Shown here: positions 8,656 to 48,634 of the stretch, piece by piece
How the letters are laid out: each line of letters starts with the position of its first letter
Position numbering within the stretch: position 1 is the first letter of the stretch
Assembly: GCA_051294905.1 (NCBI GenBank)
Contig: CM119376.1
Coordinates: 992,001-1,056,000, forward strand
DNA: 64,000 nucleotides
Source: Botryllus schlosseri
Lineage: Eukaryota
Reading direction: 5' to 3'
The notes under the pieces: generated by a model
Told to the model about the DNA's origin: nothing
Database searches by the model: none
What the model saw: only the letters and a program-made list of their open reading frames with translations
Program-made: the position numbers and the translations under genes

Positions 8656-8678
8656 GGAACTAGTGCAGTATATGCCCG
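8656..8678 (+). repeat. Left terminal inverted repeat of the giant element
   Basis: GG start, preceded by TSD GAATAATT. Confidence 0.85.
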
Positions 8679-8805
8679 CTTTACTCGTGTGTCTACTTGT
8701 CGTCATTCATCATGATTCCCCATGATCATTTAATTCAATCTCCTTTTTCACTCTCTCACTTAATCTTTTTTATTCTTATTCTCTCGTTTTTCCACACGAA
8801 TTAAA

Positions 8806-8826
8806 AAAATGCTGACTCAGCATTTT
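8806..8826. promoter_or_regulatory. Perfect palindrome containing a Maf recognition element / AP-1 site
   Basis: AAAATGCTGACTCAGCATTTT; core TGCTGACTCAGCA is the T-MARE consensus. Function inferred only. Confidence 0.45.
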
Positions 8827-8928
8827 CTCTAGTTACGAGGTTTCACTTTTTTCCGTTTGCTCCCATTATAGGAGTTTTGTCCGTTCACCCTTATTATATC
8901 ACATATTTACACTCTGCTAAAAACAGCT

Positions 8929-11900
8929 TTACATCTTCTGTATAACTGTGGGTGATATAGGGCCTTCACACAATACCACGTCTTGTACGTTTGATTGCAG
9001 CAATTCGAGTCCCTCATTTCTTAGATTTGCTGCTTTCATGCAAATTACCACATTCCGCCTTTTGCTTTTCTTTGTTGGCGTTCTGCTCAAATGAATGAAT
9101 CTCCTGTTCATCCGTTCAATGCCCGCGGACATTATCTGTCTCGCATTGTTTTCGGTCGTCATGTGGTACAGTACCTCGTTACCTTCATATTTACAGTACG
9201 GAGGAGGCGTCCCTTTTGTATGTCCATGGGCGGCCGCCATACCATATTCCGTGGTTATTGCTCTGTCGCATCTTTGCATGACACTCTGTATTTCGTCCGT
9301 GTCCATTTGTTCCCCAGTTTTCTTTTGAAAGATACTGCAAATATCTTCCCAAGGATGGAACCCGTTCACCGAGTTGTCGCAAAGTTCATGTCGACAGTGA
9401 TACATCAGCATCTGTTGTATTTTTTCCGGTCGGGGTCTTTTCTGTCGGTTCGAAACGCCCTTTTTCTTGGGAATCGTCGCCCAAACATGTGGATCATCTT
9501 CTCCCGCAGCCATCTCCATCCAATAAGAACGAGACAATCCATCTGACGTAAATACCTGCATCGTACTTAGATGAACCACCTCTTTTATTTGGAATCCTGC
9601 TAGATGATTGAGCCACCTCTGAATTAGGGGTTTTGGGCTTGGATTTTTCGCTTTGTCCGTCATTCTTTTGAGGAGCCCAAAAACCCCAGTATTATCAGTG
9701 ATTATTGTAAAGGGTAAGGCTCTCAACATTGATTGCCATTTTTCCACCGAATCTTTTAAGGCTTTCAATTCCTTTGTACATGGATCATAAGCCTTTGCCG
9801 TTGGAGTCGCCCACTTTTGGCTGTAGTAAGCAATTGGGTAAACCTTTTCGAACGGTGGTTTACACCCTTTTTCCGTCTGGAAAATGATTGATCCAAACCC
9901 AATATCTGAAGCGTCCGTTTCCACAAAAATGGGAAGATTTGGATCCAGATGATACAGAACCTTAGCATCATCGAGGGCTGCTTGTGCCGTTTTGAAGTCC
10001 TGCAGTAATTCGTTGGTCCATAGCACAGGCGTCACTCGTCCTTGTGTCGCAGGGACCTTGCCTGTCAGCGCATCGAATTTGGCCAGCTTCAAACTTAACT
10101 CAGGAATATGTTCCGAGATGTAGCGAAGTGCGCCAATCCACCCCCTTAACTCGTATACATTATGGGGTGGTGAGAGTTCGCGTAAAGCCCTTATTCTTTC
10201 GGGCTGAACCTCGATTTCTTTCCCCGTCAAGGTTGCCCCCAAAAGGTTTACCCTTCGCTTTCCAATAAAACACTTATTGATGCTAACCGTCAGTTTCATC
10301 TTGGCGAGCTGTTCAAATACCATGCGTAGCAGTAGTAAATGGTCTTCTACAGTTTTTGTGCTGAGGAAAATATCATCTATGTAGGCCTCCATAGGCGTTG
10401 CATTCTCCTCGTCTGTCCTGCCAACTTGTTTCATGTGTTGTTGGTATTTTTCCGTGATAGGTTTCACCACGCATTCCTGCATATTCGCTGACCAAAGAGC
10501 TACAGCTGTTTTAAGCCCCATCGGCATTTTACGCCATCTTACATGCATCCCTTTGATGGCTATACCCACATATTGTTTAGACCTTTCCGTGACATCCATG
10601 TGGAAATAGGCCTTCTTCAAATCAAGGAGAGAAAGCACTCCTCTGCCTTGGGCGAGCTGCTTTACGTCCGGTACCAGAGGTGGAGGTACTTCTATTGATT
10701 TTATGGCCGCATTAAGAGGTTGGAGATTCTGTACCACCCTCCATGCTTGCTTCCATCCGTCCTCCTGTTTTTGTCTCTCATTCATTTTCTGAGGGACCAC
10801 AAAGATAGCCAACTTCCATTCGGCAAAACCTCGTTCGATAACGCCCAAGTCCAGGAAGTTGTCTACGGCTTCTTTCAATGCTTTTGCCTGGCCCTCCCCC
10901 TTTAAATTATAAGGCCCAGACACAAATGGTTTCGTCGAGGGATCTTTAAGCTCGATGTCGCATTTGTATTTCATGGTTTGCGGGCCCCCAAGATGGCCTC
11001 GCAGGTCCTCGAGTTCGGATGCGAACGGCGTGTAGACGGCTTTCCAAACATCATCAGCAATAATGGTGTTTTCTGGAGTCGTCAGATCGGGAGGTTTGTA
11101 TGGGAGTTTGGCCAGCGCTACGGATTGTGCGCAGAGATTTTCGAGCTCCGTCTTGACACGTGGGTGAGTGTCTTTCTGTAAAACATACGTAGTGACTGGA
11201 CCAGCCATTGGCTGGTTTGAGATTCGTGATGACCGGGTTTTCGGTGTTGGCGGAGAGAGGGCGAGGTCCTTCGATGTATGCCTCTGATCTCGGCGCGTGC
11301 CCGCACCTACCGTCACGCCGACGGATTCCTTTTCCGCCGGGGGCCCTTTTTCTGGGGAGACGTGCATCATAAAATCCCCAGACTCCTTGTCGGACATGTC
11401 CGGATGTGCATCCGGCTGACCGGCAATTGCTGCTTCGATTGAACCTTTTGGGAAAGTACTCATTACTGTGGCTGTCGTCATGCAACTATGGGCCGAATCA
11501 TTAAGGTTATTCGGACAAGTGCATCCACGAAGGCACTTAGGACCAGTTTTCTCGTGCAGGTCTTTATTTTCGCCAGAGGACATTTCGCTCTGGATGTCAG
11601 TTGTAATAGTCGCCATGCAACTATGGGCCGGATTCCTATTGTCATCCGGACAAGTGCATCCGCGAGAGTGTTCTGGACCAGTTTTCTCGTGCAGGTCCAT
11701 CTTTACGCCAGCGGGGATTCCACGCTCGACGTCTTCATTAACGGTGTCAGCAGGCATTCCTGTCTCAACACCTATAATTTCCCATGGGTTCTGTGTGACG
11801 TTAGTTGCTAATTTCAACTCGTCGCTCGCACCAGTGGTTATTTCCATCCCGGTACTCGCGCCAGCGGCCATTTTCCGCTCCACGCTAAATTGGTTTGCAG

Positions 11901-47395: not shown

Positions 47396-48322
47396 TCACA
47401 ATTGTGGTAATATAGGAGACCCATCAAATTTGTCAAAATTATACCGTGGATCATTGTGTATAGTGCGCAGGAGTGCCAAGAATCGGTCAGTCTTTTGATG
47501 TTGACGTTTCCACAAAAACTCCCCTACGTAATCAGCCAAAAGGTGACGTGCTAAACCACGAGACCTATGTAAATGATATTTAAGCTGTCCCCAGGCCCCC
47601 TCGATTTCATTAGTACAAAAAGCTGTCCGAGGGTCCTTAAACCACCGGGAGTGGTCCACTACACCGTGTATATAACCCTTCCCCCAGCTTTCTATGCCCC
47701 TGTAGGAAGGGTAGGCATCGGTTAAAATTGTGGACCCCTCTGCCACATTTTCTACTATTAACTTTCGAAATACTTGAGCAGTCCTGTCAGAAGTTATTTC
47801 GATGAACATTTCTCCGGTGGCTTTGTCTATTCCCCCGAACGCCCAAATGGCTTTAACGGCTGGTCCTTTGTCTGAGGCAACCCGACGCTTAGCCAGATGC
47901 GTTTCATCAATAACTACACAACCGCCTTCATTTCCCAAACGTCGCTTATTCCTGTGAAATTCGGCCGTACAAAGCTTTCGCAATCGGCCACACCAGGTGA
48001 CCGTTGAACGTTGGCTAATCTCGGCTTCATGCGAAATTTGGGTTTGCAACGCGTCATGGGACCAAAAGTAGAACAATATTAATAATTTGGGAAGTTCTAC
48101 CTTGCTTCCCGCGAATATCGAGTGTTTCCGTATAGTCGCCGTAGTGTCACAGGGGTTGCATCGCCACCTAAATCCATCATCGCCTGTTGACGTAATTTCC
48201 TCTTTCATTATTTTTTTACATCGCTTGCATTTCATCCTTCGCACCAACAACCCGTGATTTCTCAGAAATATCACACAATCCCGTGTGTTTAGCAATGCAC
48301 CCGATTCGACCAAACTCAACAC
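47396..48322 (-). CDS. IS1595/ISXO2/Merlin-family DDE transposase, copy 1 (next to right end)
   Basis: CKRC..WRCNPC Zn ribbon, VIDET, LTDAYPSY, DH, TNEIEGAW, YVGEFLWKR. No in-frame ATG at the homologous N-terminus; probably spliced from ATG 48575-48577. Confidence 0.92.
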   Translation of the reverse strand: MLSLVESGALLNTRDCVIFLRNHGLLVRRMKCKRCKKIMKEEITSTGDDGFRWRCNPCDTTATIRKHSIFAGSKVELPKLLILFYFWSHDALQTQISHEAEISQRSTVTWCGRLRKLCTAEFHRNKRRLGNEGGCVVIDETHLAKRRVASDKGPAVKAIWAFGGIDKATGEMFIEITSDRTAQVFRKLIVENVAEGSTILTDAYPSYRGIESWGKGYIHGVVDHSRWFKDPRTAFCTNEIEGAWGQLKYHLHRSRGLARHLLADYVGEFLWKRQHQKTDRFLALLRTIHNDPRYNFDKFDGSPILPQL

Positions 48323-48409
48323 ATTGTATGTTCTTTTCCGCGTATCTGCGCAAGTAAATAATACGACATGTGGCGTCGATCAACTCCCCATCGTCTTTGG
48401 CGGATCAAA

Positions 48410-48423
48410 CCCCCCTTTTTCTT
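48410..48423 (-). promoter_or_regulatory. Polypurine tract (plus-strand primer candidate)
   Basis: Minus strand AAGAAAAAGGGGGG, matching the MLV-type PPT AGAAAAAGGGGGG. Confidence 0.65.
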
Positions 48424-48611
48424 GGCGTTTCATGTGTACTGACTCTCTCCTATTTTAATCCCGTGTTATTCCTATGACAGGGTTATTTTTTTCACTTGTT
48501 CCTTACCAGGCCTAATGATTTTTTCACCCTCATTTCAATGTACATGCAAAACACTTACTATCCCACTACACACCCATTTTATGGTGCAACAACTATCGCC
48601 GCCTAGACCTC

Positions 48612-48634
48612 CGGGCACTTATTTCACAAGTACC
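48612..48634 (-). repeat. Right terminal inverted repeat of the giant element
   Basis: Ends in CC, followed by TSD GAATAATT. Confidence 0.85.

Follow-up and report, generated by a model that had tools for sequence, protein, structure and literature searches.

How does an element that carries the gag, pol and envelope genes of a retrovirus, but neither an integrase nor long terminal repeats, come to be inserted in a chromosome? The question is raised by a block of about 40 kb (positions 8656–48634) in a 64,000-nucleotide stretch of the invertebrate Botryllus schlosseri (contig CM119376.1, positions 992,001 to 1,056,000; henceforth the window). An earlier note, made from the sequence alone, had described this block as an enveloped retrovirus-like element that appears to integrate with a Merlin/IS1595 transposase. 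Its observation, a single unit bounded by inverted ends and a target-site duplication (TSD) and holding about 20 co-oriented genes, was confirmed, with several corrections given below, whereas its interpretation is only partly supported. We found this combination of retrovirus-like genes and Merlin-type ends described nowhere.

Boundaries of the element

The span is flanked by an exact 8-bp duplication, GAATAATT, at 8648–8655 and 48635–48642. Immediately inside lie the terminal inverted repeats, at 8656–8679 on the plus strand (the 3′ end of the element in the sense of its genes) and at 48611–48634 on the minus strand. Both begin with GG, but they are imperfect, matching at 17 of 24 positions. 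Of 112 exact 8-mer pairs between the two boundary zones this pair was the clear best, the next one scoring 12/24, and it is the only such pair in the window. In 300 random pairs of regions a best score of 17 or more occurred five times, each time 19/24, presumably because of (GT)n and (AC)n microsatellites. No other 24-mer in the window matches the 17 shared end positions at 14 or more. A subterminal copy of the end motif (GGAACAAGTGAAA, 48490–48502, minus strand) is not significant on its own. These ends agree with the published definition of Merlin elements, i.e. inverted repeats of 24 bp or more with terminal 5′-GG and a TSD of 8 or 9 bp (PMC8101967).

Gene content

All 20 ORFs of 130 aa or more inside the span are on the minus strand, to which the gene coordinates below refer; the first starts about 310 bp from one end and the last stops 273 bp from the other. 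Two of them are intact-looking transposases of the IS1595/Merlin type, 38% identical to each other. Transposase 1 (47396–48322) lies next to the right end, while transposase 2 (22971–23918) is internal and has no inverted ends of its own. The two proteins gave hits to the DDE_Tnp_IS1595 domain (PF12762, 6.8e-10 and 2.5e-17) and to NF033547 (4.8e-18 and 1.7e-27), and both keep the catalytic triad (D139, D202 and E241, spaced D-63-D-39-E) and N-terminal CxxC pairs, with weak hits to zinc-finger families. Transposase 2 starts with ATG, but transposase 1 has no in-frame ATG ahead of the zinc-finger region, at the point where its paralog starts, so that its start codon is uncertain and may have been lost.

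The gag-like gene (12477–15293, 938 aa) has a CCHC zinc knuckle conserved across the family described below. A canonical −1 frameshift signal (12453–12498) leads from it into pol: the heptamer A AAA AAC lies in the gag frame (12492–12498) and is followed by a predicted hairpin (12453–12488, −17.8 kcal/mol). Pol (8929–12537), read in the −1 frame relative to gag, contains a protease with a DTG motif (about 12043–12360), a reverse transcriptase (RT) with YIDD (10228–10752) and an RNase H (9592–10020), with hits to RVT_1 and RT_RNaseH and a TDAS motif. It ends in a Tpt1/KptA-like domain (8962–9420) that the earlier note had not seen. This domain hits PF01885 at 6.6e-10 and matches PDB 8tfi and 7kw8 at 2e-6 over its whole length. 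Tpt1 RNA 2′-phosphotransferases have a conserved Arg-His-Arg-Arg catalytic tetrad; in nine family members H.RH, an Arg, GH[ST] and M.R..H are invariant, although one Arg aligns to Ala in the pairwise PDB alignment, and an invariant Arg lies 13 residues upstream of the GH[ST] motif.

No rve integrase was found in any ORF, and a tblastn search with integrase-bearing Ty3/gypsy polyproteins hit only the RT-RNase H region. Similarly, no LTR or long direct repeat was found in the window, whether flanking gag-pol, env or the whole unit. A purine-rich tract downstream of pol (8739–8795, minus strand) is a candidate polypurine tract, but we detected no primer-binding-site match, terminal redundancy or R-like repeat in the window. 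A 75-nt motif upstream of gag (15872–15948) is repeated at 17252–17328, upstream of ORF o149.

Where the earlier note had listed one env there are two paralogous membrane glycoproteins. The env-like glycoprotein (44750–47293, 847 aa) is built like a class-I fusion protein, with a signal peptide, a surface part, a multibasic site conserved in relatives, a hydrophobic peptide, about 280 aa of predicted helix, a membrane anchor and a short tail. Glycoprotein 2 (41264–44662, 1132 aa) has a signal peptide, an N-terminal domain paralogous to that of env, a Ser/Thr-rich mucin-like region and a C-terminal membrane anchor. Structure prediction did not confirm the capsid fold of gag or the fold of env (pLDDT 43 and 32).

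The remaining genes form an accessory block. Between 16758 and 19976 there are four paralogs of about 150 aa (16758–17207, 17371–17829, 19120–19515 and 19521–19976), a UBE2D-type E2 (17967–18461) and a 174-aa ORF (18484–19008). They are followed by an intronless IAP with three BIR domains and a RING finger (20123–21817) and by a 230-aa ORF (22058–22750) that shares a motif with a 207-aa ORF at 25742–26365. Beyond transposase 2, between 23987 and 30918, lie, in addition to the latter, ORFs of 184 aa (23987–24541), 290 aa (27744–28616), 170 aa (28790–29302) and 165 aa (30421–30918) and an LRR protein (24606–25655). A secondary 630-bp repeat copy sits at 29528–30154. About ten ORFs had no match in any library searched. 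Finally, the interval 30919–41263 is an ORF-free stretch of about 10 kb, with no ORF longer than 145 aa and a host-like composition.

A pol family without integrase or LTRs

Comparison with marine metagenome assemblies showed that pol belongs to a family which we did not find in the papers searched. Its members (loci L002–L009) lack integrase and LTRs and carry the Tpt1-like domain; the absence of both rve and LTRs was seen in L002, L003, L004 and L009. The lack of integrase is a trait of the whole family and not a local deletion. In the large protein library the nearest hits outside the family were Ty3/gypsy polyproteins with integrase, whereas the best solved-structure match of the RT is a caulimovirus-type enzymatic polyprotein (8r0s). 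The env genes of the family are of at least two unrelated types.

Relatives keep the order gag-pol-env. L004 has gag-pol-(CUB)-env homologs in a row, and L003 consists of head-to-tail tandem copies without LTRs, with an Exo_endo_phos endonuclease domain in pol. L003 and L004 share a 15-nt motif starting with TGG in front of gag, which looks like a primer-binding site but is absent from the window. In locus L001, env and glycoprotein 2 are conserved in the same order. Written as a circle, the window shows the same order as L004, but it is circularly permuted, with the inverted ends and transposase 1 lying between pol and env. On the other hand, relatives of the retrovirus-like module exist without any IS1595 gene within 10 kb, and the family therefore does not depend on Merlin.

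A second copy, L005, comes from another sample and is 86% identical in DNA. It matches the window from pol through the 3′ untranslated part into the inner 7 nt of the left inverted repeat and then stops, i.e. 17 bp inside the left end. The outer 17 nt of its end differ from the window and its flank is unrelated, so the junction from pol to the terminus is shared by two diverged copies. L031 (44% amino acid identity in pol) has a 16/22 match to the end motif at the same distance after pol, which is suggestive only (p about 0.08). The right end was not seen in any relative.

Nature and origin of the element

We interpret the span as one composite mobile element, a giant member of the Merlin/IS1595 superfamily of DNA transposons whose cargo is the complete gene set of a retrovirus-like element without integrase or LTRs, plus a block of genes likely to act on the host (the RING IAP with the UBE2D-type E2, the LRR protein and the small paralog families). 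We would give this reading a probability of about 0.62. What rests directly on sequence, and is well supported, is that the unit entered this site by a DDE-transposase reaction of Merlin type, given its ends, its TSD and the two IS1595 transposase genes with intact triads. The rest is inferred. One or both transposases would recognise the ends and perform the chromosomal integration that an rve integrase does in retroviruses. The retrovirus-like genes would still be functional, since their frames are open, the frameshift signal is canonical and they are conserved in diverged relatives, and they would probably serve replication or cell-to-cell spread of the same unit. The ancestor would have been a circular or tandem gag-pol-env genome of pararetrovirus style, in which a Merlin element came to lie between pol and env, so that the integrated form reads Tnp1-env...gag-pol. 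Composition is consistent with part of this view, transposase 1 sharing that of gag, pol and env (GC 0.44–0.49) and not that of the accessory block (0.32–0.43). Nonetheless, only one full copy was seen, the inverted ends are imperfect, composition is uneven and the ORF-free stretch separates the two halves.

One alternative is accidental nesting, in which one or two ordinary Merlin transposons accumulated unrelated insertions (a retroelement without integrase, host DNA and retrocopied host genes) and the retrovirus-like genes are passengers with no functional tie to the transposase or the ends. The uneven composition, the host-like stretch, the two divergent transposases and the 26 kb between gag-pol and env, which relatives keep adjacent, would all fit, as would the existence of relatives without Merlin, and the secondary repeat shows that the unit does accept insertions. 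We nevertheless consider it unlikely, because all 20 ORFs share one strand, there are no internal copies of the end motif, no boundary signatures were found around the gag-pol or env blocks, the pol-to-terminus junction is shared with L005, transposase 1 resembles the retrovirus-like genes in composition, and the accessory genes form paralog families, which points to long evolution inside an element. Less likely still is an endogenous large DNA virus, a host gene cluster that merely contains a captured gag-pol, or an assembly chimera. The IAP, E2, LRR and multigene families are typical of large DNA viruses, and no read-level evidence bears on the assembly, but a Pfam search found no DNA polymerase, capsid, packaging ATPase or other hallmark of a DNA virus in any ORF, the only run of Ns lies outside the element, and a chimera would not produce a TSD with inverted ends exactly at the limits of the gene cluster.

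The full model of the earlier note goes further in the opposite direction: the whole 40-kb unit would be copied through RNA by its own RT and enter new cells in enveloped particles, with the Merlin transposase as the regular integrase of a circular form with abutted ends. The permuted gene order and the tandem copies of L003, which resemble endogenous pararetrovirus arrays, are compatible with a circular form; the RT match to 8r0s and the motif shared by L003 and L004 also favour the model, and all cellular-type genes are intronless and in the sense orientation, as expected after passage through RNA. However, there is no evidence of a circle, the window shows no primer-binding-site match, terminal redundancy or R-like repeat, the sense strand carries 72 polyadenylation-type hexamers, the capsid and fusion folds are unconfirmed, and 40 kb is larger than the giant retroelements described in the review we read (PMC6431247), among which Burro exceeds 30 kb with its LTRs. 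We regard this model as doubtful. In its boldest form, equally tentative, this would be an enveloped, reverse-transcribing element of animals that has no retroviral integrase and integrates a circular or concatemeric DNA form through its own Merlin/IS1595 transposase acting at abutted inverted ends, a second, independent recruitment of a DDE transposase as a retroelement integrase, in a lineage of Ortervirales not found in the papers searched, without integrase or LTRs and with a Tpt1-like domain, whose integration module would be interchangeable (Merlin here, an Exo_endo_phos endonuclease in L003).

Retroviruses and LTR retrotransposons are thought to have arisen when an RT element acquired a DDE transposase as its integrase, and a present-day element pairing the same kind of gag-pol-env set with a different DDE transposase superfamily would be a natural replicate of that event. 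Independently of the Merlin link, the pol family widens the known architectures of reverse-transcribing elements.

Comparison with known systems

The ends, the TSD and the transposases with their N-terminal zinc finger are those of Merlin/IS1595 transposons (Feschotte 2004, as summarised in PMC8101967). Merlins described there carry essentially one transposase gene, while this unit is 39,979 bp long with 20 genes, among them two divergent transposases and a retrovirus-like cargo. In its logic it resembles Teratorn, the alloherpesvirus fused to a piggyBac transposon in teleosts (PMC6431247, PMC10175614), where a virus-like gene set is likewise enclosed by the inverted ends of a DDE transposon that supplies chromosomal integration, and its size is similar to that of the smallest Teratorns (41 kb). 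The partners differ, Merlin and not piggyBac, and gag, pol and env of reverse-transcribing type and not a herpesvirus with a DNA polymerase and capsid, and activity is inferred here from sequence alone. If the inference is correct, the element would be the reverse-transcribing counterpart of Teratorn.

Among giant retroelements, Burro/GYPSM1 of planarians (PMC6431247) is also retrovirus-like and carries BIR, RING and ubiquitin-pathway functions and an env-like fusion protein, and the IAP and E2 found here suggest that this element manipulates host apoptosis and ubiquitination, as proposed for Burro. Burro, however, has LTRs and an rve integrase and packs these functions into one huge polyprotein, whereas here they are separate genes. 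Terminons, the giant Athena/Penelope-like elements of bdelloid rotifers (PMC6431247), also encode an RT and many ORFs, including membrane proteins, but they have a Penelope-like RT and hammerhead ribozyme ends, attach to telomeres and have no inverted ends, TSD or DDE transposase. Caulimoviridae and their endogenous tandem arrays share a PR-RT-RH pol without integrase and the absence of LTRs, and tandem copies are seen in L003. Caulimoviruses are plant viruses of 7–8 kb with no envelope and no transposase; sequence identity to them is low, and the present family has env genes, a Tpt1-like domain and, in the window, Merlin ends.

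Gene content and order

The window is eukaryotic, of invertebrate type, with microsatellites, SINE-like repeats and other transposons, and with a single N run at 1094–1230 that was left untouched. Within 8656–48634 every ORF of 130 aa or more, 20 in all, lies on the minus strand. Read in the sense of the genes, from 48634 down to 8656, the order is transposase 1 (47396–48322), an 847-aa env-like glycoprotein (44750–47293), a 1132-aa glycoprotein (41264–44662), a stretch with no ORF longer than 145 aa (30919–41263), six small or medium genes including an LRR protein, transposase 2 (22971–23918), a 230-aa ORF, an IAP with three BIR domains and a RING finger (20123–21817), six small genes including an E2, gag (12477–15293) and pol (8929–12537). 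The unit described in the earlier note, i.e. co-oriented retrovirus-like genes and two IS1595-family transposases between inverted ends and an 8-bp duplication, without rve integrase or LTRs, was confirmed by our analysis. Exact-protein look-ups of four window proteins (1132-aa glycoprotein, IAP, transposase 2) found nothing, as did a word-based protein search with the 1132-aa protein. Scans of IMG/VR with both glycoproteins and with the pol alignment likewise found no relatives.

The flanks contain other elements. In the right flank there is an unrelated transposon with a pogo/Tc5-type DDE_1 transposase ORF (49915–51573, plus strand), together with tRNA-derived SINE-like repeats, a tandem repeat of about 345 bp and a 127-nt inverted repeat pair that looks like a MITE (52205–52285, 61522–61602, 53034–53651 and 57026–57493). 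No empty-site paralog of the flanks lies in the window.

Ends of the element

The sequence GAATAATT lies directly outside both limits, and the first and last 24 nt of the unit are inverted repeats that match at 17 of 24 positions and both start with GG. Among all exact 8-mer pairs between the two boundary zones (112 pairs) this one is the clear best, the next scoring 12/24. In 300 random pairs of regions a best score of 17 or more appeared five times, each time 19/24, probably owing to the (GT)n and (AC)n tracts. No other place in the window matches the 17 shared end positions at 14 or more. A 13-nt copy of the end motif, 132 bp inside the right end, is not significant on its own, and a short palindromic pair resembling the end motif (14/17 shared positions) in another of the sequences examined (L027:14011–14086) is within chance expectation for the amount of sequence scanned. 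Merlin elements have been defined by inverted ends of 24–462 bp with terminal 5'-GG, TSDs of 8 or 9 bp and a DDE_Tnp_IS1595 transposase with a zinc finger (PMC8101967), and each of these features is present in the one full copy that we have seen.

Transposases

Both transposases hit PF12762 and NF033547, are 38% identical over their full length and share CxxC pairs and the triad D139, D202, E241. Transposase 2 starts with ATG. Transposase 1 has an open frame but no in-frame ATG at the point where its paralog starts, which we count as one possible loss of the start codon. In base composition transposase 1 groups with gag, pol and env (GC 0.44–0.49), while transposase 2 groups with the accessory genes (GC 0.32–0.43). 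To test a model of two separate elements we looked for inverted ends around transposase 2 and for internal copies of the end motif, and found none.

Retrovirus-like genes

The gag gene carries a CCHC knuckle. A family profile matches retroviral nucleocapsid chains only weakly, and the profile search of gag against solved structures gave nothing beyond the nucleocapsid zinc knuckle. An AlphaFold model of gag residues 380–800 (single sequence, pLDDT 43) was too poor for fold searches. The pol gene, handled throughout as a frame separate from gag, overlaps it by 61 nt in the -1 frame. The heptamer A AAA AAC lies in the gag frame 13 nt before the gag stop, and is followed by a hairpin of -17.8 kcal/mol. 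Pol has a DTG protease motif, an RT with YIDD and an RNase H with TDAS, and a 135-nt tandem duplication (77% identical) encoding a repeated Cys-containing peptide lies between protease and RT (11474–11733). At its C-terminus (8962–9420, minus strand) there is a domain resembling the Tpt1/KptA RNA 2'-phosphotransferase family (PF01885, 6.6e-10; PDB 8tfi, 2e-6), for which we found no precedent in a retroelement pol in the literature searched. The best solved-structure match of pol is a caulimovirus-type enzymatic polyprotein (8r0s, 1e-17), followed by foamy virus PR-RT and Ty3. No ORF contains an rve integrase, and integrase-bearing Ty3/gypsy polyproteins match only the RT-RH part of the window. 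There are no LTRs, and a search for R-like repeats between the region upstream of gag, the region downstream of pol and the 5' end gave nothing that scored above shuffled sequence. Rfam and tRNA scans of the window and of the related loci were empty, and TATA and polyadenylation hexamer counts were uninformative. A 75-nt motif upstream of gag (15872–15948) recurs upstream of the last small ORF (17252–17328) and may be a shared regulatory piece.

Glycoproteins

The 847-aa protein has a signal peptide, a surface part, a multibasic site followed by a hydrophobic peptide, about 280 aa of predicted helix, a membrane anchor and a short tail. This is the layout of class-I fusion proteins, although no homology to a known fusion protein was found, a profile search of env against solved structures gave nothing, and the AlphaFold model (2-sequence alignment, pLDDT 32) was too poor for fold searches. 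The 1132-aa protein has a signal peptide, an N-terminal domain paralogous to that of env (E 2e-8), a Ser/Thr-rich region and a C-terminal anchor. A Logan contig (L001) carries homologs of both genes in the same order, at 62% and 41% identity, in which the cleavage site and the following peptide are largely invariant.

Accessory genes and the ORF-free stretch

The E2 (17967–18461) is of UBE2D/UbcH5 type (PDB 6t7f, 5.5e-49), the usual partner of RING E3 ligases such as IAPs. The element also encodes the RING IAP (20123–21817), and the two are a possible self-contained ubiquitination pair. Four ORFs of about 150 aa within 16758–19976 are paralogs without any family match, and two further pairs, the 207- and 230-aa ORFs and the 184- and 290-aa ORFs, share motifs. 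All cellular-type genes lack introns. An unclassified repeat is present in two copies (74% identical), one in the left flank (5772–6415, plus strand) and one inside the element (29528–30154, minus strand), the inner one being a secondary insertion. The 10-kb stretch at 30919–41263 has no coding signal, no repeats and no match to any sequence with which it was compared. Its composition is host-like (GC 0.39, CpG o/e 1.07) and it remains unexplained.

Relatives of the pol family

A full HMMER search of 1.8 billion representative proteins with pol recovered a distinct family, comprising near-full-length members at 38–47% identity (proteins P0010, P0011 and P0012) and fragments at up to 86% identity, after which only ordinary Ty3/gypsy polyproteins with integrase appeared, at 25–30%. 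We examined the loci of these proteins and three metagenome contigs. The loci designated L002, L007 and L008 carry gag and pol. Another, L003, has head-to-tail copies of gag, pol and env without LTRs, identical where they overlap, although one gag carries a deletion and one pol is cut off by another transposon. Its pol has RT, RNase H, a Tpt1-like domain and, after it, an AP-endonuclease-like Exo_endo_phos domain (1.9e-18), and is followed by an env that matches alphavirus E1 (5e-19), an arrangement noted at L003:721–6727. In L004, gag and pol are followed by a CUB protein and then by two ORFs homologous to the surface and fusion parts of the window's env (E 1e-11 and 1e-29), with small ORFs on both sides, while L009 has gag, a pol without the Tpt1 domain and a 1337-aa ORF. 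None of these has rve, LTRs or an IS1595 gene within 10 kb. The Tpt1-like domain is conserved, with invariant H.RH, Arg, GH[ST] and M.R..H motifs, in nine members; besides the window it was noted in L002, L003, L004, L005, L031 and L032 (the last three being further relatives). Two otherwise unalignable relatives, L003 (7716–7730 and 7884–7898) and L004 (7239–7253), share in front of gag a 15-nt motif that starts with TGG, with a shared 9-nt motif 13 nt upstream of it. This looks like a primer-binding site, but it is absent from the window.

These comparisons show that lack of integrase and lack of LTRs are family traits. The family order is gag-pol-env, whereas in the window env lies at the 5' end and gag-pol at the 3' end. 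Written as a circle the order is restored, with the two inverted ends and transposase 1 between pol and env, and a circular or tandem ancestor, as in L003, opened at a Merlin element would explain this simply. The left limit is confirmed to within 17 bp by L005, a 788-bp contig from another sample that is 86% identical in DNA over the alignment. It aligns from the pol C-terminus through the whole 3' untranslated part to the inner 7 nt of the left inverted end and then diverges, its flank being unrelated, so the junction from pol to the terminus is not private to this locus. The outer 17–18 nt of L005 still end in CC at the same position within 1 nt and resemble the right end at 16 of 24 positions (p about 0.001 against random 25-mers, partly owing to the shared inner part). 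In L031 (pol 44% aa identity) there is a 16/22 match to the end motif 269–291 nt after the pol stop, against 250–273 nt in the window, but the score alone occurs in 8% of shuffles. The right end was not seen in any relative.

Interpretation and comparison with known systems

The sequence itself establishes that the insertion signature is that of a Merlin-type DDE transposition and that the transposase genes are inside the unit. It is by inference only that these transposases would act on these ends and replace the missing integrase, that the retro genes would be functional and serve the same unit, and that the DNA substrate would be a circle or a concatemer. The interpretation offered in the earlier note, a reverse-transcribing, particle-forming element that borrowed a DNA-transposon integration system, is supported only in part.

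We favor the reading of a single composite unit, with a probability of roughly 0.62, while the full life-cycle model is no more than a tentative possibility. Accidental nesting appears unlikely, and a DNA virus, a host gene cluster or an assembly chimera very unlikely.

Literature searches for a fusion of Merlin with a retrovirus-like element returned no paper describing this combination. The unit shows every Merlin feature that could be tested, but falls outside the LTR retroelements in lacking integrase and LTRs, and in these same two absences its pol resembles that of pararetroviruses. The accessory functions recall Burro, which carries BIR, RING and ubiquitin-pathway parts and an env, while the logic of the whole is that of Teratorn, a herpesvirus with piggyBac.
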